Virus record (IMG/VR): IMGVR_UViG_3300033997_000136
Location: 1 to 64,000 of that record
DNA: 64,000 nucleotides
Strand: one strand, 5' to 3'
Under the pieces are notes generated by a model. That model was not told the DNA's origin. It saw only the letters and a list, made by a program, of their open reading frames with translations, and made no database searches. Within the stretch, counting starts at the first letter, position 1. Every line of letters begins with the position of its first letter. Below, one piece after another: positions 1,050 to 22,114 of this stretch. The position numbers were made by a program, and so were the translations under genes.

Positions 1050-1086
1050 GGACTCAGAGCATCCTCTGAGTCCTTAACCTTGTATG
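1050..1086 (+). promoter_or_regulatory. Hairpin followed by putative late (nvRNAP) TATG promoter core
   Basis: ggactcagag-catc-ctctgagtcc (1050-1073), TATG at 1083-1086, next ATG at 1100. TATG is the known phiKZ late-promoter core. Confidence 0.45.
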
Positions 1087-1099
1087 CGAGATTTTAACT

Positions 1100-1624
1100 A
1101 TGGCACATGTAAATCCACAACTTTTAGCAGAAGCCCGCGACACCCAGTTGTTAGATGACATCATTAACATTGGTGAGCGCAATCCACAAGTTCAGTTAGT
1201 CGACTTTAAGAAGTATGTGTTGCCTATGTTGGCAAATCCTGAAACTACCGACTTAAACTGGTATTTGGAAATGGTCGGTTCATGGTATCGTGGTTTAGAT
1301 ATCTATGACGGTGAAACACATGTATTCACAGTACCTCCTTTATTAACCCGCATTGAAACATTAGACAGTGCCGTGGATAAAGGTGAGACCGCCAACATCC
1401 TGGACCGTGCTAACCAGCAAACTCGTACACAACCTCGTGTTGGTATCGAAGCAATGCGAACTGTGCTTATGGAAAAAGTAAAGTTCTCCAGTGACGATGT
1501 TAAGTACAAAGAGATGTGGCGTGAGGTATTAACTACATGTGGCGTTGCATTGCCTGATGCAGCAAGTGAATCTAAAAGCTCGCCCGTAGTTAATCGTGAC
1601 AACTATGACAGCGAAGACCTGTAA
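1100..1624 (+). CDS. Conserved hypothetical protein (core block, upstream of SbcD)
   Basis: 174-aa ORF overlapping the SbcD start; FTVPPL-type motif; synteny. Confidence 0.7.
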   Translation: MAHVNPQLLAEARDTQLLDDIINIGERNPQVQLVDFKKYVLPMLANPETTDLNWYLEMVGSWYRGLDIYDGETHVFTVPPLLTRIETLDSAVDKGETANILDRANQQTRTQPRVGIEAMRTVLMEKVKFSSDDVKYKEMWREVLTTCGVALPDAASESKSSPVVNRDNYDSEDL

Positions 1625-2735
1625 CATCAAAGGGGTTACGTTATCGGATATTCACTTAGGCCACCGAAGAACACCGACTGAGTTCATTGCACGCAACTTA
1701 GAGAAGATGGTATTTACTCGCAATTATGCGGATTTAGATGTCATCTTTATTTCAGGTGATTTGTTTGACAGAACTTTACCATTATCAAGCGATGATTCCT
1801 TTGAGTCTATTCAATGGTTGGGTCGTCTCATTAATTTTGGTAAAGCAAACAAAATAGTGGTGAGGTTGTTAGAAGGGACACCAAGTCACGAGTGGAAACA
1901 AACTCGTATATTAGCCGCCATCAATGAAATTGCAGGCGGTGATTGTGATGTGAAGTGGGTCAGTACACTATCCATTGAACATCATGCTAAACTTGGTGTG
2001 TCTATTTTGTACATCCCTGATGAATGGTCACCAGACCCGGATGATACGTGGAAACAAGTTCAAGCGTTGTTAGCTTCTGAACAAATGACAAGTGTTGATT
2101 TTACCATCATGCATGGTCAATTCCCGTATCAACTTCCAGCTCATGTAAAAGCACCTACTCACGTTCCAGAACGTTATCAATCGATTACGAACTACCTATG
2201 TTTCTGTGGACATGTCCACACACATAGCGTACTCGGAAACATTGTTGTTCCAGGGTCGTTTGATAGACTTGTACATGGCGAAGAAGGTCCAAAAGGATTT
2301 GTAGAATGGACTGTTCGTTCTAAAGACAACTGGGATGTTTCCTTTGTTGAGAACAAAGGTGCAAAACGCTACGTGAATATTGATGTGAAAGGACAATCGC
2401 ATGAAGAGATGTTACTGACTATCGATGCACGTATCGCAGAACTTCCTGACGAGAGTCATATCCGATTAGAGACGTTTAAATCAGACCCAATAGCGGCTGT
2501 TCTTCAAACAGTACGCGTAAATTACCCACAGTTTGTTTGGTCAACACCTAAACTTGTTGATTCAGGAACCGACGTTGCCGAACCTATTATGGATAGGCGA
2601 ATGAAGTTAGAAACTGTGCCTATAAACCCACGCACACTTCCTGATTTGGTGAAAAACGAATTAGTTGCTCGTTCAGTTGATTCGACTACTGCTGAGTTTT
2701 GTTTACACCTGATTAGAGAAGCTTTACCTAAGTGA
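1605..2735 (+). CDS. sbcD: SbcD/Mre11-like metallophosphoesterase nuclease (phiKZ gp65-like)
   Basis: Motifs LSDIHLG, ISGDLFD, LEGTPSHE, MHGQF, GHVH. ATG 1605 preferred over GTG 1596. Confidence 0.9.
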   Translation: MTAKTCNIKGVTLSDIHLGHRRTPTEFIARNLEKMVFTRNYADLDVIFISGDLFDRTLPLSSDDSFESIQWLGRLINFGKANKIVVRLLEGTPSHEWKQTRILAAINEIAGGDCDVKWVSTLSIEHHAKLGVSILYIPDEWSPDPDDTWKQVQALLASEQMTSVDFTIMHGQFPYQLPAHVKAPTHVPERYQSITNYLCFCGHVHTHSVLGNIVVPGSFDRLVHGEEGPKGFVEWTVRSKDNWDVSFVENKGAKRYVNIDVKGQSHEEMLLTIDARIAELPDESHIRLETFKSDPIAAVLQTVRVNYPQFVWSTPKLVDSGTDVAEPIMDRRMKLETVPINPRTLPDLVKNELVARSVDSTTAEFCLHLIREALPK

Positions 2736-2742
2736 TACACGT

Positions 2743-3600
2743 ATGAGTGATTATCAAACGCGTGAAATAACCACAGTCTCGGGTGTGGTTAGAACAGGAG
2801 GTACTTATGACTTATCGATTGGCACATCACTTGCCATAGAAGGGTTAATGGGTACTCATCCTGATAAACCTGCAAACGAAGCGGATGTACATACGGCGCA
2901 AGTCGTCGCTATTAATATCCGAACGTTAATTCGTAATGCATACGAAGCGTTGGGTGAGCAGAAAACCTACACGGGTTATCGGGATTTAGCTGATATTGTG
3001 TATGGTGAGATGGTGTATATTCAAGCCATCCTAAAAGAAGCCAACCCAAAGCTTACCATGAGCTTTTACTACAATAAACAAGAGACGCTTCTGAAGAAGT
3101 TTAAACCCTTATCGTTCAGGGTCGTTGCTACGCCAAAAGCAAAAGCAACGGAATCAACTTTAGATTCAGCGTTTAAGCACTTGCTTTATTTGTGTGATAA
3201 AAACATCTATGTTGCAGATATTGCTACCAATGAAATAAAAGAACAACCCGGAATAGTGATGCTATCACATTACATTCTGGATTTGTTGTTTATCATTGCA
3301 ATGCCATCTGCCTTTTTGTTGGAATCACATACTGGCGTAATGAAAAAGAAGACAGCGTGGGCAACAAAGCTTGGTGAAAAGGAAGCTGCAACGCTTCCGT
3401 TTTGCTTATTTACCATTCGTGTGTTTGGTGATAAGAGTAATGTACTTATGCCGCTTCCCGTTAAGTATCGTCGTGCTATCCTTGAGTTAGCGAAGAAGAA
3501 TCGGTGGTCAATGATTACCACTGTTGATAAAATGCGAATGAACATCAAAACTATTAATGATCAAGATATCCGTGATTTGTTATTATCTAACCTTGTGTAA
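2743..3600 (+). CDS. Conserved hypothetical protein (phiKZ gp66-like), possibly nuclease-fold
   Basis: 285 aa between SbcD and the ChmC-like gene. No catalytic motif I can confirm. Confidence 0.6.
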   Translation: MSDYQTREITTVSGVVRTGGTYDLSIGTSLAIEGLMGTHPDKPANEADVHTAQVVAINIRTLIRNAYEALGEQKTYTGYRDLADIVYGEMVYIQAILKEANPKLTMSFYYNKQETLLKKFKPLSFRVVATPKAKATESTLDSAFKHLLYLCDKNIYVADIATNEIKEQPGIVMLSHYILDLLFIIAMPSAFLLESHTGVMKKKTAWATKLGEKEAATLPFCLFTIRVFGDKSNVLMPLPVKYRRAILELAKKNRWSMITTVDKMRMNIKTINDQDIRDLLLSNLV

Positions 3601-3648: not shown

Positions 3649-4425
3649 ATGAGCGAACAACAATCAGAAAGTCAGGGGTTTTTAGCGATACTGCGAAACC
3701 CGAAGTTTAAGTTACGTGCACCAAAAGTAGATGGGGGTCGCAGTAATCCCACGTTTGGTTTTGATGTCTACAAAGGTATTCCAAGTATCTCTGTATTTAC
3801 CAATCATCCTAACGATGAAGGTAAAAAACCTATTCGCATCGGTTTTTCATTAAACTGGTTTAAGATGTTAGTGAAGACCGTTCAAATGGTTGCCACGAAG
3901 TATGAACCAGGTACATCACGTGCTATCGCTTGTTACAGCGGCCAACCAGGTAACAAACAGAAAGTAGGTGACGTTGACATCGGTAAAGATTCCAACGGCA
4001 TTATGTACGTTGGCATTATTGTTGATGGTTATCACAAACAGCGCTGGCCAATCCAAGGCGACGGTTACCACACTATCCGCGATAGTCGTACAGGTGACAT
4101 CATTAAAGATTCTGAAGAGTCTTGTTTGCTGGCTGTGACCTATTTTGAGATGATTTATGAAATTGTCTTTGAACTGGTAGGTCGCACGTATGAAGAGCCA
4201 CCAAAGCAACAAGGTGGTGGTAAAGGCAACTACGGCGGTAATAAAGGTAATTACGGCGGCGGAAATAAAGGCGGGTACAACAACCGCGATAATCGCAGCG
4301 GTGGTTACAACAACAATGGAAATAACAACAATCGTCCACAAGGTGGCGGTGGTGGTTATGACCAATCAAACGACCGTGGTGGTCATTCGTTTGATGTTGA
4401 AATGGATGATGACATCCCGATGTAA
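3649..4425 (+). CDS. chmC: ChmC-like phage-nucleus-associated nucleic-acid-binding protein
   Basis: Folded N-domain plus G/N/Y/R-rich disordered tail ending MDDDIPM; directly upstream of the gp68-like gene; GGAG SD before ATG 3649. Confidence 0.7.
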   Translation: MSEQQSESQGFLAILRNPKFKLRAPKVDGGRSNPTFGFDVYKGIPSISVFTNHPNDEGKKPIRIGFSLNWFKMLVKTVQMVATKYEPGTSRAIACYSGQPGNKQKVGDVDIGKDSNGIMYVGIIVDGYHKQRWPIQGDGYHTIRDSRTGDIIKDSEESCLLAVTYFEMIYEIVFELVGRTYEEPPKQQGGGKGNYGGNKGNYGGGNKGGYNNRDNRSGGYNNNGNNNNRPQGGGGGYDQSNDRGGHSFDVEMDDDIPM

Positions 4426-4442
4426 GATGGTAAGTCCATATA

Positions 4443-4473: not shown

Positions 4474-4490
4474 ATGTTGAACAAGATTAC

Positions 4491-4511
4491 AAACATACAT
4501 TATAAGAATGA
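4491..4511 (+). promoter_or_regulatory. Putative early (virion RNAP) promoter motif, copy 1
   Basis: aaacatacattataagaatga; same motif at 9501, 22122, 23325, 55953, 58900. Confidence 0.6.
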
Positions 4512-4544
4512 TATTCCCCACAGAATTATAAACAAGGACACCTC

Positions 4545-6116
4545 ATGCGATTCATCGATTTGACTTTACCGAATGATCCATTGACTAAAATAGCCATTGA
4601 GCATAATGGTCAGCAAATTCCATGGGATGTAACGTTTTACAATAAATCAAAGAACGTAAACTTTGACGGTATGTTCAGACATATCAACGACTATTTTAAA
4701 ACGCTATCTCCACAACAACAAGACACCATGTTTGAAACCTATCAGTCGATTAAAACAGCGATTAAAACGATGGTAGACGTGTTGGGTTTACAAACAGTGT
4801 TGATTCGTCTTGTTCGTAAGTTGTACGAACACATTGAGTTTAACAAACTACACGAATACGTTCGTGTATGCACAACACGCAGCATTCGTGTTCCATCGAC
4901 CATTAAGCACACGTACGCTGAATTGGAGATTTCTGAACGCAATCAAACGGAAAACAACTACCGCAGTAAAACGTATCTTTACGATGAATACGTAGAGCTA
5001 TTAACGCTGGCGTTAGCTTCTCGTTTGATGGCACCTGTGTGGGCTGAGTACATGACGACGTTGGATTCTACAATAAACAGTAACCACAAAGAGTTACATG
5101 CATTGAGTTTACTAAGTCGCACTGGATTACCGAATACAGCAGCGTATGTTCGTTTGCAGGAATATGTGGGAACCATCACGATTCAACAAAAGTCGCTTAC
5201 ATCAGCCATCATTGAAGGTTTAGGTACGTCACAAATGCCTGAATGGTTGTTAAGTAGTGTACTGGTTCGTAAGTTGACCATTGTTGAACTATCTAGTCAG
5301 CTCACTGAAAAGGCTGATGACAACAACGTAGTGAGTGTGGTTTGGAAGTATGTGAATAACATTATCAAATCCATTGACCGCAAACACACAGGGTACATTC
5401 GTGAAAAAGAAGTACCTCGTGATGATGGTGATGAACCAGATAGTAAATCGATTGTAGAGACGTACAAGATACGTGAAGCATTATCCGTAGGCGATATTAC
5501 AGCACCCTCTGTGTATGCTGAAGACCCATTCCGTATTGCTATTGACATTGACCCTACAATTCCTGATGAGTACATTCATTTGTCTTCAGGTATTTTAGAT
5601 GACAACACTGCACACATTCACTTTAGACCGTGGCAGTTTTACATGATGTCAATGATTATGGATAGTGTCTTATCGTGTCGTGCACCGATTGACATCAATC
5701 GTTTACCTATCTTAAGTTGTTTTGCAGCAGCTCAAGCGTTATTGTTTCATTGGGGGCATAAAGAATTGGCATTGCTCATTACAGCAAAGCAGGATGTTGA
5801 TTCTGAAGGGCGTTTATGTGGTGGGATAGAATCTCGCAATCGGATTCCAAATGAATACGTAGAAAAGTTTAAGCGATTGTACAAGTACAATCGTGTACAA
5901 GGGAGTTCTCGTTCAACGGATAGGCAAACTAACGTTGGATGTCGTTCTGTGGATGCATTTGCGTTAGAGCTGGTTCTTTGTGACTGGCGATTAACATGCG
6001 ATCCATGGTTCATCGAACAAGCTGACTTAGGTCATCACTTGCAACCTGACAATGTGATGATTGTTCCTGCAGACGTGCGGGTTCTGTTAGCTAAGTTTTT
6101 AGAACAAATAGCATAA
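4545..6116 (+). CDS. Non-virion RNA polymerase specificity (sigma-like) subunit, phiKZ gp68-like
   Basis: 523 aa; position between ChmC-like and PicA-like genes in the nvRNAP operon; early promoter motif upstream. Confidence 0.75.
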   Translation: MRFIDLTLPNDPLTKIAIEHNGQQIPWDVTFYNKSKNVNFDGMFRHINDYFKTLSPQQQDTMFETYQSIKTAIKTMVDVLGLQTVLIRLVRKLYEHIEFNKLHEYVRVCTTRSIRVPSTIKHTYAELEISERNQTENNYRSKTYLYDEYVELLTLALASRLMAPVWAEYMTTLDSTINSNHKELHALSLLSRTGLPNTAAYVRLQEYVGTITIQQKSLTSAIIEGLGTSQMPEWLLSSVLVRKLTIVELSSQLTEKADDNNVVSVVWKYVNNIIKSIDRKHTGYIREKEVPRDDGDEPDSKSIVETYKIREALSVGDITAPSVYAEDPFRIAIDIDPTIPDEYIHLSSGILDDNTAHIHFRPWQFYMMSMIMDSVLSCRAPIDINRLPILSCFAAAQALLFHWGHKELALLITAKQDVDSEGRLCGGIESRNRIPNEYVEKFKRLYKYNRVQGSSRSTDRQTNVGCRSVDAFALELVLCDWRLTCDPWFIEQADLGHHLQPDNVMIVPADVRVLLAKFLEQIA

Positions 6117-17249: not shown

Positions 17250-18557
17250 TTAGCGCATATTGACACGGAAGTTATATGGAACTGTCTTCAGGGTTGTACC
17301 ATGCATAGATGCCATGAATATACCCATGAATATACTTGCAGGTCGAGAACCTGCTGAGGCTAATCCAGTTGGATTATTCTCATATTTCTCACCAATACAT
17401 GTTTTACAATAATTGGCGTTTGGTGCTTTGCAAAACGCGGTTGTTCGATACACAATCGATTTACCCATATAGCGAGTAATATTGTCGTTCGTTAAACGAA
17501 CAATATGCTTACCCCCTTCGATAATATTTAAACCAATCAGTTCGTTTTTATTCAAGTCACTGACAATATCATCCATACCTAACGTACTACCGCAATCATC
17601 CATTACTAGCTTAGAGTTTTGAAGTAATTGCAAGATACGTTTCACCGCTTCACCACCGAGCGCTGTTTCAGCACCTCGGTCATAACTACCCTCACGTGAA
17701 GCGTTAATAATGGTGGGGTATTGGTTTACATCAATCCCTTCAATAAGTGGTTTTGCAATCAACGTTTTACGCGTACCATCTGTAAATGCGCTTTCACCAC
17801 CAAATGTACCGAAGAGTTTCTTACGAGAGACATTCCGTAATTTCCCTTTGATAAAGAATCCTTCAGATACATCACCTTTAAGGTGCTCTCCGTCAAACTC
17901 CACGATTTCCTTATCCATCTGAGCCAGTATCGCTGGGTCATGAAGTTGTCCTTCATACTTCTTCATTAACCCTGCTACAAACTCTTTCATCTTTGGATGA
18001 GGCGTCATCGTTTTACGTGAAGCTGATGGCACACATGTCTGTGTCAGTAATGTAGCTAAATAAGACGCTTTTTGAAACTTTAAATATTCCGTTGTGGTGA
18101 TTTCACCATCAGGTGGATTAACTCCAGGTGGATACACTTTGTATAACTTAAGAATAGCGCTCTCAAGCATACCACCAGTGATTCCTTTTTCCGGGTTCAT
18201 AAACTCAATTTTGTCGTGGAATGGGAACACCAGCAAGATAGCGTTCATCAGCGCTTGACCGTACGATGTTTTTACGGTGTCTGTTTTGATATTAGGTAAA
18301 TCCCCTTTCTTTAATGTCGTCAAGTCTTTATTCATTTTAAAGACAGGTTGACATGCATCTTCAGTGGTTTCAAAATCAGAGATATCAATACGAACACCGT
18401 TTTCATCAAATACGTACGCATGAATGCCGTCGTAGTTAACGTAGTAAGGTTCAAGAATTTCTTCCCCACGTGTGTATTGAAAGGCACGTTGTATCCAACG
18501 ATACTTTTTATACAACTGAAGTTGCAATGCTTTTAGAAATAGCGCATGACGTTTCAT
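17250..18557 (-). CDS. rpoC: Virion RNA polymerase beta-prime subunit fragment (phiKZ gp80-like)
   Basis: SREGSYDRGAETALGGE bridge-helix region, DDCGS, FCKAPNANYCKTC zinc site. Confidence 0.88.
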   Translation of the reverse strand: MKRHALFLKALQLQLYKKYRWIQRAFQYTRGEEILEPYYVNYDGIHAYVFDENGVRIDISDFETTEDACQPVFKMNKDLTTLKKGDLPNIKTDTVKTSYGQALMNAILLVFPFHDKIEFMNPEKGITGGMLESAILKLYKVYPPGVNPPDGEITTTEYLKFQKASYLATLLTQTCVPSASRKTMTPHPKMKEFVAGLMKKYEGQLHDPAILAQMDKEIVEFDGEHLKGDVSEGFFIKGKLRNVSRKKLFGTFGGESAFTDGTRKTLIAKPLIEGIDVNQYPTIINASREGSYDRGAETALGGEAVKRILQLLQNSKLVMDDCGSTLGMDDIVSDLNKNELIGLNIIEGGKHIVRLTNDNITRYMGKSIVYRTTAFCKAPNANYCKTCIGEKYENNPTGLASAGSRPASIFMGIFMASMHGTTLKTVPYNFRVNMR

Positions 18558-19411
18558 ACAACACCCTTAGATGCTTTCATAAATTCAAACGAAGAAAGTT
18601 TCTGAATCAAACCAGACAGTACAGACGCATCATGAACAAACGGTTCAATCGTTCTTGAAACAACGTCTATAATGGATTCAGGAGGAATACCCATACCCAA
18701 GTGTGCAGCAATCACATCACCTACAACATCATCCGTAACTTGTGTAATACCATCATCAAAAAACTCACGCAGATAAACACCCACGTCATATCCAAGTTTA
18801 CCACCCTCTTCTCGAATAAAACGAATAAACCGAGAAGGCGTGTATTTTGTAAACCCATCTGTCTTTGTAAGTGCGATAAACGCTTTAATGTGTTTGTTGT
18901 CAAACACTTCTACTGGACGGTATTTGCGTTTGTCTAATTCAACGTTACAGTAGTCACGAATCATGGTCATACAGACTTCAGAAACTGAGGCAATAGAACC
19001 TAAGAGTGCATCAGACTGAACATCAGTTACAAATGTTGTAATTTCAAGTAAACGCTCTTCAGGAGTAAGTTCTGTTTCATCAACATACTCCACTACAGAT
19101 GCTAAATCTTCAAACGCAGTAATCGATAAGAAGACACGAAGATAGGTGATGGCTTGAAATAACGTTGCATCATCCGCTAAACACACACCATGTTCAGATA
19201 GCTTATCTAACGTAATCGATAAATAAACTTCTTCAACAGCATCTACAATACCAGACGTTTCACAACCACCAACCATTAAACTAAAAATGTAATCTAATTG
19301 GTCCAAGTGGTCTTCTATTTTAGCTTCTGCAAATAATTTATCTGCATCTAAAATAGTGTAGCCACGTGAATTAGGGGATGCGTTTTCTACTAGCTCGATA
19401 ATAGTGAGCAT
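18554..19411 (-). CDS. Conserved hypothetical protein upstream of vRNAP beta-prime (phiKZ gp81-like)
   Basis: 285 aa; ATGA overlap with the downstream gene. Confidence 0.65.
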   Translation of the reverse strand: MLTIIELVENASPNSRGYTILDADKLFAEAKIEDHLDQLDYIFSLMVGGCETSGIVDAVEEVYLSITLDKLSEHGVCLADDATLFQAITYLRVFLSITAFEDLASVVEYVDETELTPEERLLEITTFVTDVQSDALLGSIASVSEVCMTMIRDYCNVELDKRKYRPVEVFDNKHIKAFIALTKTDGFTKYTPSRFIRFIREEGGKLGYDVGVYLREFFDDGITQVTDDVVGDVIAAHLGMGIPPESIIDVVSRTIEPFVHDASVLSGLIQKLSSFEFMKASKGVV

Positions 19412-19550: not shown

Positions 19551-20015
19551 ATGACTAAAGAACGCCAACGTCAACGCAAAGGTAAGTACCAAGCACGACA
19601 GAAGATGAAAGAAACTCAAAACATTCTGCACGACTTGTTTACACTGGATGCCAAAGTAACCAATGCGTTAAATACGCCATCTCGTTTAAACCCACTCATG
19701 TCTGATGAGACGTTAATGGCACATGCAGACAAAGCACGCGTCGTTGAATTAGCAGGTTTCATCGATGCCGATGTGCGTCGCCTAGCAGTTCGGGTTGAAG
19801 TAGTTCGTACCAAATTTAATCCAAAGTCTGTGTTTAACACAGATGCTGAAAAACATCGTGCAAACCAAATCGGTTTAGAGTTTTCTACTATTTTAGAAGA
19901 CTTTGTTGAAACTGTGGATGCTAACATTTCTACGCTGATGGATTTGTTAAATGAAGCAGCGCGTAAACGCGATGAAGCCGCTAAAGCATCACCTGAAGTG
20001 GAGACCGTAGAATGA
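19551..20015 (+). CDS. Hypothetical helical protein with basic N-terminus
   Basis: 154 aa; AAGGA SD; ATGA overlap with the next gene. Confidence 0.7.
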   Translation: MTKERQRQRKGKYQARQKMKETQNILHDLFTLDAKVTNALNTPSRLNPLMSDETLMAHADKARVVELAGFIDADVRRLAVRVEVVRTKFNPKSVFNTDAEKHRANQIGLEFSTILEDFVETVDANISTLMDLLNEAARKRDEAAKASPEVETVE

Positions 20016-21634
20016 CCGTAAACGAAACCAACGGGATTGGTGAGTACAATCCTAATGAACCTTTTTTGGCAGACACAGACACAACTGTGCAAGCTGTAGA
20101 AGTTCCAAAAGACGAACCGTCACCAGCTCCCGCAGATGACCAGTCTGTTAACACCGAAGTTTCATCAGACTCTGACGATGAAACTACATCAGACGACGAC
20201 AGTGAATCCTCAGTCACTGAAAGACCATCTGTTCTTCGTGCGTATGAAATACCAGCAGGTCGTCATCCATTTGTCTTATCTATTCCATCGGATGGTAAAC
20301 ACGACGAACCATTGGTTGTACTGACCATCAGTAAAACTGACTTTAAAGAAATCCGTGATTTAACGGAAAAGAAAATTGTCAGCGGCGATAAAATCAATCA
20401 ATGGGTTGAAGCCACCACCATTGCATTAGGTCAGTATCATTCGGACGATGTTACTCACCACTTCGAACGTGAAGGTAGTGATTGGACAAACCAAGTAAAA
20501 CACGGTGATGTCACCATTGGTCCAAAACGTTCAAAGTTTAACGTCAGTAAACGCGCAAACTCAGTAGTCAGCGGTGAAGATGCATTGTTATTAGCGCGTC
20601 AATCTGCAAACCTGGGTACAACGTTAGACTTCCCATTATTCCACACTGGGATTCGTTTGGGTATTCGTGCACCACTGGATGCTGAGTTGTTACAGGTTGA
20701 ACAGGCTATCAGTTTAGATAAAATAAACTTAGGCCGTCGTACAGCCGGTGCTTCGTTTGCGAACACCAGTATCTACATGTTTAAACATGCGGTGGATTTA
20801 GCATTACGTAAAGTGTTTCACACCAACTATGAGTCTGTAGTTGCTGAAGACTTGCGTAAAGTTATTCGTGTGACTGACGTACCTCGTCTGTTAGCATCCA
20901 TGATGATTACTGTGTACCCACACGGGTATTACATGGTTCGCCCGTGTGTGTCTAACCCTGAAAAGTGTACACACATTGATGAAGGTACGGTGAACTTAAA
21001 CCACATGCTTCAAACGGATGATGCATCGTTAACAGCTATCCAAAAAGCAATGTTGTTATCTGATGCAGCAATGACAGCAGACCGTCTTGAGACGTATCAG
21101 AACGCACACGTAGCGAAACAAATCGATCGCGTTGAGTTGATGGAAGGTATCTGGTTGCATCTGGAAGTCCCCACCATCCAGACGTTTATGGATTCAGGTC
21201 GCCGTTGGGTAGACGGTATTGTTGAAATGATTAAAGAAACGTTCAAACAAGAACCTTCTGAAAAAGAGCGCGATGCGTTCATCCTTCAACAAGCCATGGT
21301 TACACGGATGCGTCGTTACGCACACTGGATTAAGAAAATCGAGTATGTAGATGAAATCTTTGTTACCGATGTACTTGACATTGAACGTACGCTAAATGAG
21401 TGGTCTGGTGAAGATGATTTGTACAAAACGTATAAAGAGAAAATCGAAACGTTCATTAGCAACGCGACGATTGATGCGTTTGGTATTCCGTACCACACCT
21501 GTACAAAGTGTAAATCTGAACCTCACCCAGCGTTCAAGTTAAAGAACTTAGAACACTTGATTGCAGTGGATGCGTTAGAGTGTTTTTTTACCCTACTGTC
21601 CCGCCGTTCATCCAAGACACTAACCAGAATCTAG
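20012..21634 (+). CDS. Conserved tail-assembly-chaperone / baseplate-hub-assembly-like protein (frameshift G-type product)
   Basis: 540 aa; acidic N-terminus; IRAP..E motif; two Cys clusters (PCVSNPEKC, CTKC); ends shortly after a TTTTTTT slippery run. Confidence 0.6.
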   Translation: MTVNETNGIGEYNPNEPFLADTDTTVQAVEVPKDEPSPAPADDQSVNTEVSSDSDDETTSDDDSESSVTERPSVLRAYEIPAGRHPFVLSIPSDGKHDEPLVVLTISKTDFKEIRDLTEKKIVSGDKINQWVEATTIALGQYHSDDVTHHFEREGSDWTNQVKHGDVTIGPKRSKFNVSKRANSVVSGEDALLLARQSANLGTTLDFPLFHTGIRLGIRAPLDAELLQVEQAISLDKINLGRRTAGASFANTSIYMFKHAVDLALRKVFHTNYESVVAEDLRKVIRVTDVPRLLASMMITVYPHGYYMVRPCVSNPEKCTHIDEGTVNLNHMLQTDDASLTAIQKAMLLSDAAMTADRLETYQNAHVAKQIDRVELMEGIWLHLEVPTIQTFMDSGRRWVDGIVEMIKETFKQEPSEKERDAFILQQAMVTRMRRYAHWIKKIEYVDEIFVTDVLDIERTLNEWSGEDDLYKTYKEKIETFISNATIDAFGIPYHTCTKCKSEPHPAFKLKNLEHLIAVDALECFFTLLSRRSSKTLTRI

Positions 21635-22074
21635 AGGCTCCTGACAGTCATGTGCTGTCTCCTCAGTTTGGTCAGAAGGAATTCTTTAACACACCTCAGG
21701 TTTCAAATACGTTACGACACTATCACACGCACGATTCTGTGCTTGCTGGACAAGTGCTCGGGATGGCGTATGACATGGACTACGGAATACATGACCACAC
21801 CAAAGACCCACATCCATGGTCTGGTATCATCCTTCACCCAAAAGAGGATATTCGAAAGATAGATCCATTTCGTTTATCCCTTGATAAGTTTTTAAAGAAC
21901 AACGTCAAGGAACTCACAGGGTATACACATCGTGAATTCACGATGTTAGAACGAAGCCATCAACAATTAATTATTGATGCGTTAGTTCACTACAAGGATT
22001 ATGTTGCACGTCTTCAAGAAGAAGCCAAACGTAAAGCTGAGGCTGAGAAAGAGAAGAAAGGTAAGGACAGGTAA
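21580..22074 (+). CDS. Overlapping -1 frame ORF; probable frameshift extension (GT-like) or GTG-initiated protein
   Basis: 164 codons with no ATG before codon 63; ELTGYTHREFTML pattern resembles chaperone extensions. Confidence 0.65.
   Translation: MFFYPTVPPFIQDTNQNLEAPDSHVLSPQFGQKEFFNTPQVSNTLRHYHTHDSVLAGQVLGMAYDMDYGIHDHTKDPHPWSGIILHPKEDIRKIDPFRLSLDKFLKNNVKELTGYTHREFTMLERSHQQLIIDALVHYKDYVARLQEEAKRKAEAEKEKKGKDR
21583..21589 (+). other. Candidate programmed -1 ribosomal frameshift heptamer U-UUU-UUU
   Basis: GAG TGT TTT TTT ACC in the frame of 20012..21634; the -1 frame GTG TTT TTT TAC CCT opens ORF 21580..22074. Confidence 0.6.
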
Positions 22075-22081
22075 TATTGAT

Positions 22082-22114
22082 GTCGTAGGGTCATCCCTAC
22101 GACTCTTTTATATG
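22082..22114 (+). terminator. Intrinsic terminator followed by TATG
   Basis: gtcgtaggg-tcat-ccctacgac then tctttta; TATG at 22111-22114. Confidence 0.7.

Follow-up and report, generated by a model that had tools for sequence, protein, structure and literature searches.

The phiKZ gp77 orthologue of this phage carries, near the end of its 540-codon reading frame, a run of seven T's that is best explained as a site of programmed -1 ribosomal frameshifting, yielding a short (540 aa) and a long (687 aa) isoform. The same arrangement is kept in every nucleus-forming jumbo phage examined, including phiKZ, although none of the public annotations inspected records it. The window, a stretch of 64,000 nucleotides of IMG/VR virus record IMGVR_UViG_3300033997_000136, contains the following features in this region:

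19551..20015 (+), small upstream ORF (154 aa), the positional counterpart of phiKZ gp78; its stop overlaps the start of the main gene by 4 nt (20012-20015).
20012..21634 (+), 0-frame ORF (540 aa), the short isoform, a phiKZ gp77-family protein with four conserved Cys (C312, C319, C497, C500); the invariant F525 and near-invariant F526 are the slip codons.
21583..21589 (+), slippery heptamer T_TTT_TTT, with the P-site Phe TTT at 21584-21586 and the A-site Phe TTT at 21587-21589.
21590..21594 (+), ACCCT directly 3' of the run, encoding Thr-Leu in frame 0 and (Ty)r-Pro in frame -1.
21589..22074 (+), -1 frame extension of 161 codons plus stop (22072-22074), giving the 687-aa long isoform with residues 1-526.
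21632..21634 (+), 0-frame stop codon TAG, ending the short isoform.
22082..22103 (+), intrinsic-terminator-like hairpin (9-bp stem, 6 G-C pairs) with a T-rich tail, starting 8 nt after the -1 frame stop and marking the likely end of the transcription unit.

The observation on which the original prediction was built holds. The ORF reads GAG TGT TTT TTT ACC, the heptamer is in phase as X_XXY_YYZ, and 14 codons separate it from the stop. After a -1 slip the reading becomes ECFF|YPTVPPF and continues for 161 codons, so that the predicted fusion of 526 + 161 = 687 aa is correct, and the motif ELTGYTHREFTML is present. The first ATG of the extension is its codon 58. One detail needs correction, since the -1 frame had been said to open exactly at the heptamer: it is open from 21520, 21 codons upstream, and GTG 21580 is only the first start-type codon found in the mechanical ORF list. 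The same 2.1 kb is letter-for-letter identical in two IMG/VR contigs from two samples, and is also fully contained in four subsurface-metagenome runs, indicating that the T7 is not a one-off assembly error.

The 0-frame protein matches phrog_4585 over residues 36-538 (E 3.8e-96), and translated searches hit 216 jumbo-phage records, including phiKZ gp77, PhiPA3 gp074 and 201phi2-1 gp136. An exhaustive search of representative proteins gave 1,297 relatives, while word-indexed searches returned only 2, 1 and 5 because of their index, and a search for related loci with the single protein recovered only the window's own contigs. The gene order is also that of the family. A phrog_2962 RNA polymerase beta subunit (17250-18557, minus strand) and a phrog_5038 gene (18554-19411, minus strand) lie upstream, followed by the small ORF at 19551-20015. 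The same order (a virion RNA polymerase subunit and a gp79-like gene, usually divergent, then a small gp78-like ORF) is seen in DT01, Goslar, Simmy50, PhiPA3, phiKZ and others, and the small ORF precedes the gp77 homologue in every annotated relative. The extension matches phrog_12109 (E 5.5e-21).

Whether the slippery codons and the overlap are conserved among orthologues had been set as a test beforehand; the T-run with its P-site TTT and the overlap are, and the feature is far beyond chance. In 26 loci found by protein similarity alone (mostly 20–47% identity, with hosts from Pseudomonas to Bacillus), a T5–T8 run sits at the homologous codons, the 0-frame stops 8–37 codons later, and a homologous extension of 148–172 codons follows in the -1 frame, never +1. 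That frame is open from the T-run across the 0-frame stop for 123–159 further codons. Of 22 loci scored, 19 have T_TTT_TTN in phase and three have the imperfect G_TTT_TTY. Four homologues lacking the FF pair have only T5–T6 shifted by one codon, but still carry a TTT codon preceded by T. The Z position varies freely (T, C, G, A) while the other positions are fixed. The P-site codon is TTT in all 22 loci, although TTT makes up only 1/17, 1/21, 2/21 and 3/22 of the Phe codons elsewhere in the DT01, Totoro, PhiPA3 and FLC1-1B genes. The product of each gene's own TTT fraction is 4.6e-12, a figure that assumes independence of the loci and so overstates significance. The preceding codon encodes C, T, V, L, I, Y or G, but ends in T in 19 of 22 (expected 0.38, binomial P = 4e-6). 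In an ungapped comparison, the ACCCT block is the only other nucleotide block kept in at least 14 of 22 loci, and the pattern CCN-NTN-GAY-N11-T7-ACCCT finds 52 sites in IMG/VR, of which 50 are in this gene family. A T-run followed by ACCCT after a P-x-D motif is thus a simple signature for the gene.

In 60 of 68 loci there is no ATG, GTG or TTG in the -1 frame between its last upstream stop and the slip site, and in 67 of 68 there is none preceded by a Shine-Dalgarno-like tetramer. In several that stop is only 1–5 codons upstream (the 46%-identity relative, the metagenomic relative L025, a Halocynthia phage, phiKZ, AgentSmith), and phiKZ, AgentSmith and L025 have no start-type codon for 85, 87 and 93 codons after the slip. 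The extension proteins are homologous from the slip site on (22 extensions aligned, and a further alignment of 36 sequences), with motifs YP, HV..FG, AYD..YGI.DH, HPKED and F..LPR, and HV..FG precedes the first ATG in 53 of 59 loci. The structured part is under strong purifying selection (dN/dS 0.07–0.27), while the linker just after the 0-frame stop evolves fast, with mixed dN/dS of 0–1.1 on stretches of only 9–31 codons, too short and variable to be informative; counts of conserved motifs upstream of start codons were used in its place. Annotators have chosen inconsistent starts for the downstream ORF, giving products of 75–182 aa, and phiKZ ORF 076.4 is only its last 80 codons. No in-frame fused homologue appears among the top 150 of the 1,297 representatives, all of which end shortly after the slip position (8–34 residues after the FF motif in the 124 where it could be located). 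RNA contigs of a phiKZ-like genome from four studies run unbroken across the slip site, carry T7 without an indel and, in three of them, end just after the -1 stop (6–10 nt), and LucasX has an annotated terminator at the same place as the hairpin of the window.

No stimulatory RNA structure was found. Folding energy downstream of the heptamer is no lower than elsewhere in the genes in 51 non-redundant loci (mean z between -0.22 and +0.16), and neither a conserved structure nor a conserved upstream Shine-Dalgarno-like element was seen in the nucleotide comparison. The original prediction had likewise noted no strong downstream stimulator. Efficiency may therefore be low, or may depend on something not detected, but many phage chaperone frameshift sites also lack such an element, so that its absence lowers the expected efficiency rather than the claim itself.

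The most likely explanation, held with fairly high confidence for the recoding itself, is that most ribosomes read frame 0 to the stop at 21632-21634, giving a 540-aa protein ending in a short basic helix. A fraction would slip back one base when the two Phe-tRNAs sit on UUU UUU within U_UUU_UUU and continue to 22072-22074, the downstream ORF having, in this view, no translation start of its own. In the long form the terminal helix (residues 521–539) would be replaced by Tyr-Pro, a flexible linker and a helical domain. What the comparison demonstrates is the conservation of the arrangement across the family in nucleus-forming jumbo phages. The existence of the long protein, the ribosomal rather than transcriptional nature of the slip, and the long form being the minor product are inferred from sequence, as is the role of the protein as a non-virion assembly factor for the tail hub, by analogy with T4 gp26/gp51, with the extension adding a second binding surface as the T part does in lambda gpGT.

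The interpretation offered originally, of a chimallivirus tail or baseplate assembly chaperone with G/GT-type logic and a frameshifted minor product, is only partly supported: the frameshift has strong comparative support, but the identity does not as stated. Pfam, NCBIfam and PDB sequence searches gave no match for either part, and Foldseek against the PDB gave nothing for either AlphaFold model (540-aa form, pLDDT 84.3, pTM 0.82; extension, pLDDT 87.0, with a low-confidence linker of about 20 residues and a helical domain ending in a long helix at extension residues 122–160). The ESM Atlas gave nothing useful for the extension (scores <= 0.80). A looser form, a baseplate or hub assembly chaperone, receives some support, but remains tentative. 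Against BFVD, Foldseek matches the predicted structure to about nine predicted structures of T4-like 'baseplate hub (assembly)' proteins, mostly labelled as such (E 1e-5 to 1e-3, prob 1.0, TM by target 0.48–0.58, but rmsd 7–10 Å). The ESM Atlas gives PF12322, the T4 gp26/gp51 family, by features (0.90) and by structure (TM 0.64 by the target over query residues 185–532). Both sides of these comparisons are predicted models, as no solved gp26 or gp51 structure appeared in the PDB searches. PF12322 is also the commonest Pfam family among members (5 of 91, below threshold, best E 0.0011), although the window protein itself has no hit at E <= 0.1. Profile-profile comparison is not significant, with hhalign probabilities of 18.6% for gp26, 10.5% for gp51 and 19.5% for an 11-sequence gp26+gp51 alignment, the T4 side being shallow and the match essentially a shared CPxC knuckle, and PHROG cross-hits between the two families were absent. 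The similarity is thus a lead and not a membership. T4 gp26 and gp51 both belong to PF12322 and are listed as hub assembly chaperones (PMC3004832). The phiKZ record carries no structural note for gp77, and the Churi homologue is listed among non-structural proteins detected at 15 min after infection (PMC11849849), which is early for a tail assembly factor.

Of the alternatives, transcriptional slippage is not excluded but is considered unlikely. A phage RNA polymerase stuttering on the A-run of the template and adding one U in a fraction of transcripts would give the same 687-aa protein, and the conserved element is a homopolymer, mostly T7–T8. Where the A-site codon ends in C, G or A the run is usually extended on the 5' side and so stays at T7 in 5 of 7 cases, hinting that run length itself matters. 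The lack of a detectable stimulator and the unusual multisubunit polymerases of these phages point the same way. However, 9 of the 26 loci have only T5–T6, which is short for efficient polymerase slippage, usually needing about 9 or more, and the site fits X_XXY_YYZ with only Z free. The RNA contigs from four independent phiKZ-type data sets carry the unedited T7 with no alternative contig, but since assembled contigs drop minor variants this shows only that editing is not the majority; the sequencing runs that contained the window itself were DNA metagenomes or covered only small shares of it. Independent translation of the downstream ORF, from an internal start or by reinitiation, with the T-run simply encoding a conserved Phe-Phe, is very unlikely. 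In its favor, the window has GTG 21580 just before the run (a possible start already raised as a caveat in the original prediction), a GAGG at 21635-21638 followed by GTG 21652, all public annotations examined treat the two as separate CDS, and Phe-Phe-Thr-Leu is conserved at the protein level. However, GTG 21580 is not conserved even in the 46%-identity relative, which has a stop codon immediately upstream of the heptamer in the -1 frame, and candidate starts within the extension fall at codons 2–93 with no conserved position. The scarcity of upstream starts, the conserved residues lying before the first ATG in most loci, the retention of TTT against codon bias and of T at the preceding wobble base, and the -1 register in 26 of 26 loci all weigh against it.

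A homopolymer miscall splitting one 687-codon gene, conceivable in a metagenomic assembly because such runs are error-prone, is effectively refuted, as the split occurs in the 26 loci found by similarity and 50 found by pattern, including many independently sequenced cultured phages (phiKZ, PhiPA3, 201phi2-1, Goslar, SPN3US and others), besides the identical contigs and runs and the lack of fused homologues noted above. True membership of the lambda G/GT – P2 E/E+E' family, which escorts the tape-measure protein, is also very unlikely. The layout is the same, several sub-threshold Foldseek hits are to proteins named tail assembly or tape-measure chaperone (E 0.4–3, prob 0.07–0.25), and one GenBank record names a T4 gp51 homologue 'tape measure protein assembly chaperone'. 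Against this, the upstream product is 4–5 times larger than known chaperones of that family (about 100–150 aa), there is no sequence-family match, and the significant fold matches are to gp26/gp51-like proteins. The gene is not located between tube and tape-measure genes, a caveat already made originally; its neighbors are the RNA polymerase subunit, a gp79-like gene, unknowns and a dCTP deaminase, and the same holds in the annotated relatives.

No published report of this frameshift was found in literature searches. The 'gp77' of the Goslar structure preprint is an unrelated capsid decoration protein, and that preprint does not mention a tail chaperone. If the long isoform is real, a core gene of the nucleus-forming jumbo phages (phiKZ gp77, PhiPA3 gp074, 201phi2-1 gp136, Goslar gp081 and their relatives) has been mis-annotated in every public genome examined, and its roughly 78 kDa product is missing from proteome search databases, so that it could not have been identified. 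Correction would give a testable hypothesis for a conserved protein of unknown function, namely two isoforms of a gp26/gp51-like assembly factor, and would extend the long-known frameshift logic of tail assembly chaperones to a different protein family and to a group of phages in which no tail chaperone was found described in the papers that could be searched. A more speculative and unlikely possibility, though of considerable interest if true, is that all nucleus-forming jumbo phages use this event to make two isoforms of their so far unidentified tail-hub or tape-measure assembly chaperone. As no RNA stimulator is detectable, the slip rate would be set by something phage-specific, such as a trans-acting protein bound near the conserved U-run/ACCCU or the phage-modified ribosomes known from phiKZ infection, and the isoform ratio would be a regulated step of virion assembly.

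Among known systems, retroviral gag-pol type U_UUU_UUA sites use the same U-run heptamer, and Bacillus phage AgentSmith has exactly T_TTT_TTA, but those sites act on eukaryotic ribosomes and depend on a downstream stem-loop or pseudoknot. In E. coli dnaX (tau/gamma), tandem -1 slippage on a homopolymeric heptamer inside a long gene yields two isoforms with a common N-terminal part, as is inferred here. However, dnaX uses A_AAA_AAG with an upstream Shine-Dalgarno-like element and a downstream hairpin, neither of which was found here, and its shifted product is the shorter one. Between predicted models only, the fold of residues ~185–532 resembles that of PF12322 proteins. T4 gp26 and gp51, which belong to that family, share the CPxC knuckle and are, as is inferred for gp77, non-virion morphogenesis-type proteins. 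T4 gene 26 also gives two products, but gp26 and gp26' share the C terminus through an internal in-frame start, whereas the two products here would share the N terminus through recoding, and the gp77 protein is twice as long, without a significant profile match. The closest layout is that of the lambda G/GT and P2 E/E+E' tail assembly chaperones (Xu, Hendrix and Duda 2004). Here, however, the upstream protein is of about 520 aa with a different predicted fold and a four-Cys site, the gene does not lie between those for tube and tape measure, there is no sequence or significant fold relation to G-like chaperones, and a role in tail assembly is only inferred. The shared features are a -1 slip a few codons before the stop of the upstream ORF, an extension ORF without a start of its own, two products (inferred in the case of gp77) with a common N-terminal part that are not expected in the virion, often no strong RNA stimulator, and a T-run as slip site, the T_TTT_TTG of P2 being exactly the heptamer of Erwinia phage pEa_SNUABM_54.

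Reading of the window confirmed the layout that had been described. The ORF reads GAG TGT TTT TTT ACC, with a run of seven T's in phase as T_TTT_TTT and 14 codons before the stop. A -1 slip gives ECFF|YPTVPPF at the junction, and that frame runs for 161 codons, so that the fusion is 526 + 161 = 687 aa, while the +1 frame closes after 3 codons. The original prediction therefore held as an observation, except that the -1 frame does not open at the GTG at 21580 but is already open from 21520, this GTG being simply the first start-type codon in it. The features concerned are as follows.

20012..21634, plus strand: 0-frame ORF encoding 540 aa
20012-20250, plus strand: codons for the N-terminal ~80 residues of that protein
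21583-21589, plus strand: the seven T's
21590-21631, plus strand: 0-frame tail, between the slip codons and the stop
21632-21634, plus strand: TAG stop of the 0-frame
21650-21862, plus strand: 70-codon ATG ORF in the third frame, lying wholly inside the extension
22072-22074, plus strand: stop of the -1 frame
22082-22103, plus strand: terminator-like hairpin

The 70-codon ORF is probably spurious, given that the -1 frame is the conserved one. The same 2.1 kb is identical in two IMG/VR contigs from different samples and is fully contained in four subsurface metagenome runs.

A tblastn search found relatives in 216 phage records, all of them large phiKZ-like genomes, at under 60% identity (32% or less among those listed). 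The family profile is phrog_4585 (E 3.8e-96), and the extension matches phrog_12109 (E 5.5e-21). The orthologues are phiKZ gp77, PhiPA3 gp074, 201phi2-1 gp136 and Goslar_00081. Synteny is kept, with a virion RNA polymerase subunit and a gp79-like gene upstream (usually divergent), a small gp78-like ORF, and then this gene. An exhaustive search of 1.84 billion representatives gave 1,297 family members. Some family members carry an extra 110–220 residues at the N terminus, as in SPN3US (locus positions 1083-3053), Phobos (1224-3341) and a third locus, L030, with 656, 705 and about 750 codons respectively, and match the longer profile phrog_8054, but their C-terminal slip site and extension are unchanged.

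To examine conservation of the layout, 26 loci were collected by protein similarity only, so the sample is unbiased with respect to the T-run. Nineteen are cultured phages of Pseudomonas, Erwinia, Escherichia, Klebsiella, Salmonella, Serratia, Ralstonia, Xanthomonas, Vibrio and Bacillus, plus the Halocynthia-associated phage, six are metagenomic relatives, and one is the window itself. In all 26, a T5–T8 run lies at the homologous codons, the 0-frame stops 8–37 codons later, and the -1 frame is open from the run and continues 123–159 codons past that stop. The heptamer is T_TTT_TTN in phase in 19 of the first 22 loci and G_TTT_TTY in the other three, and the last position takes all four bases, as expected for the Z position. 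The remaining four representatives, chosen because they lack the Phe-Phe pair, still have T5–T6 with a TTT codon preceded by T, and a stretch of 131–143 codons past the stop. A pattern search of IMG/VR for P-x-D, 11 nt, T7 and ACCCT returned 52 sites, of which 50 lie at the end of a frame of 470–750 codons, or of one cut off by the locus edge, and wherever the locus extended far enough a -1 extension of 149–184 codons followed. A second, different jumbo-phage contig (IMGVR_UViG_3300033997_000478, 324 kb) from the same metagenome sample as the window's contig carries the same T7-ACCCT site, with a 178-codon -1 extension.

Constraint is also evident at the nucleotide level. The P-site codon is TTT in 22 of 22 loci, even though TTC is strongly preferred elsewhere in several of these genes (TTT is 1 of 17 Phe codons in DT01, 1 of 21 in Totoro, 2 of 21 in PhiPA3 and 3 of 22 in FLC1-1B). 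The product of the per-gene TTT fractions is 4.6e-12, a figure that assumes independence and so overstates significance. The codon before it encodes C, T, V, L, I, Y or G, yet ends in T in 19 of 22 loci (expected 0.38; P = 4e-6).

The extension has no start of its own but is clearly coding. In 60 of 68 loci there is no ATG, GTG or TTG in the -1 frame between its last upstream stop and the slip site, and in 67 of 68 there is none preceded by a Shine-Dalgarno-like tetramer. In several loci the -1 frame has a stop only 1–5 codons before the run, which confines the frame change to the short window between the run and the 0-frame stop. After the run, there is no start-type codon for 85 codons in phiKZ, 87 in AgentSmith and 93 in the metagenomic relative L025. 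The extensions align from their first residues, with the motifs YP, HV..FG, AYD..YGI.DH, HPKED and F..LPR, and the HV..FG motif precedes the first ATG in 53 of 59 loci. The structured part is under strong purifying selection (dN/dS of 0.07–0.27). Annotators have picked starts that give products of 75–182 aa, and none of the annotated records examined joins the two CDS. In phiKZ (NC_004629, record positions 71442-71903, minus strand), ORF 076.4 (80 aa) is only the C-terminal half of a 165-codon -1 frame extension of gp77, and the 218-nt ‘intergenic’ gap between gp77 and 076.4 is open, conserved coding sequence without any ATG, GTG or TTG. No homologue among the top 150 of the representatives is fused in frame; all end shortly after the slip position, 8–34 residues after the FF pair where this could be located (124 of them).

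For a phiKZ-like IMG/VR contig, RNA contigs from four studies cover the gene end and the extension without a break and carry T7 with no indel. In three of the four they end 6–10 nt after the -1 stop, and a poly(A) loose end in the Nanopore set marks a 3' end. Two RNA-library contigs carry an extra A at the stop codon of the -1 ORF relative to the IMG/VR contig (position 3517 of locus L029, the phiKZ-like contig), probably a strain difference between phiKZ isolates. In the window, a strong terminator-like hairpin (9-bp stem, 6 G-C pairs, T-rich tail) starts 8 nt after the -1 stop, and no plus-strand terminator-like site was listed between the 0-frame stop and that point. The extension therefore belongs to the same transcription unit, and the unit ends right after it.

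The best-supported reading is tandem -1 slippage of the two Phe-tRNAs on U_UUU_UUU. While the conservation of the arrangement comes directly from the comparison of loci, the production of two isoforms, the ribosomal nature of the slip and any function of the products are inferred from sequence and predicted structure. No stimulator was found: downstream folding energy is not lower than elsewhere in 51 non-redundant loci, and the only other conserved nucleotides are ACCCT directly after the run. Both frames are weakly conserved as protein right after the site, against a negative +1 control, so ACCCT may simply reflect dual coding, as Thr-Leu in frame 0 and Tyr-Pro in frame -1. Insertion of one U by the RNA polymerase would give the same protein and cannot be excluded, because contigs hide minor RNA species, but the T5–T6 runs in 9 of 26 loci and the unedited main RNA argue against it as the general mechanism.

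The N part models with high confidence (pLDDT 84.3, pTM 0.82, from 149 sequences). Its N-terminal ~80 residues are acidic, rich in Ser, Asp and Glu, modelled as disordered (pLDDT about 41–52) and not alignable between relatives, while four Cys are invariant or nearly so. The slip codons F525/F526 lie inside the last predicted helix (521–539). The 8–37 residues that follow the slip codons in frame 0 form, in this model, the end of an amphipathic, basic helix and are themselves weakly conserved (consensus ..FFTLxxxRxxxx), so that the overlap is read as dual-coding and the short form would have a C-terminal element that the long one lacks. In the long form, that helix would be replaced by Tyr-Pro, a low-confidence linker of about 20 residues, and a helical domain ending in a 39-residue helix (pLDDT 87.0).

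Neither part matches a solved structure. Against predicted viral structures, the N part first matches its own family and then about nine T4-like ‘baseplate hub (assembly)’ proteins at E 1e-5 to 1e-3 and prob 1.0. The ESM Atlas gives the same lead to PF12322, which is also the commonest weak Pfam hit among family members (5 of 91). T4 gp26 and gp51 both belong to PF12322 and are listed as hub assembly chaperones (PMC3004832). In T4 (NC_000866), their genes are adjacent and divergently transcribed (3803-4429, minus strand, and 4480-5229, plus strand), and both match PF12322 strongly (E 8.8e-64 and 3.9e-52), so the two hub assembly factors are paralogues; one GenBank record (Acinetobacter phage Berthold) names the gp51 homologue ‘tape measure protein assembly chaperone’. 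Profile-profile comparison is, however, not significant, and the resemblance is treated as a structural lead and not a membership. Hits to proteins named tail assembly chaperone are below threshold. The non-virion status, inferred from indirect evidence only, fits an assembly factor: there is no structural note on gp77 in the phiKZ record and the Churi homologue is listed as non-structural, although detection of the latter at 15 min does not fit such a role so well.

On present evidence, inferred from sequence comparison, this is a family-wide, unannotated recoding site in a core gene of nucleus-forming jumbo phages, and full-text literature searches found no description of the frameshift. The proposal that the pair is a tail or baseplate assembly chaperone with a frameshifted minor product is only partly supported. 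The decoding logic is that of lambda G/GT and P2 E/E+E', and one relative even uses the P2 heptamer T_TTT_TTG, but the protein family, size and genomic position are different, so that membership of that family fails on two of the three defining features that could be tested.
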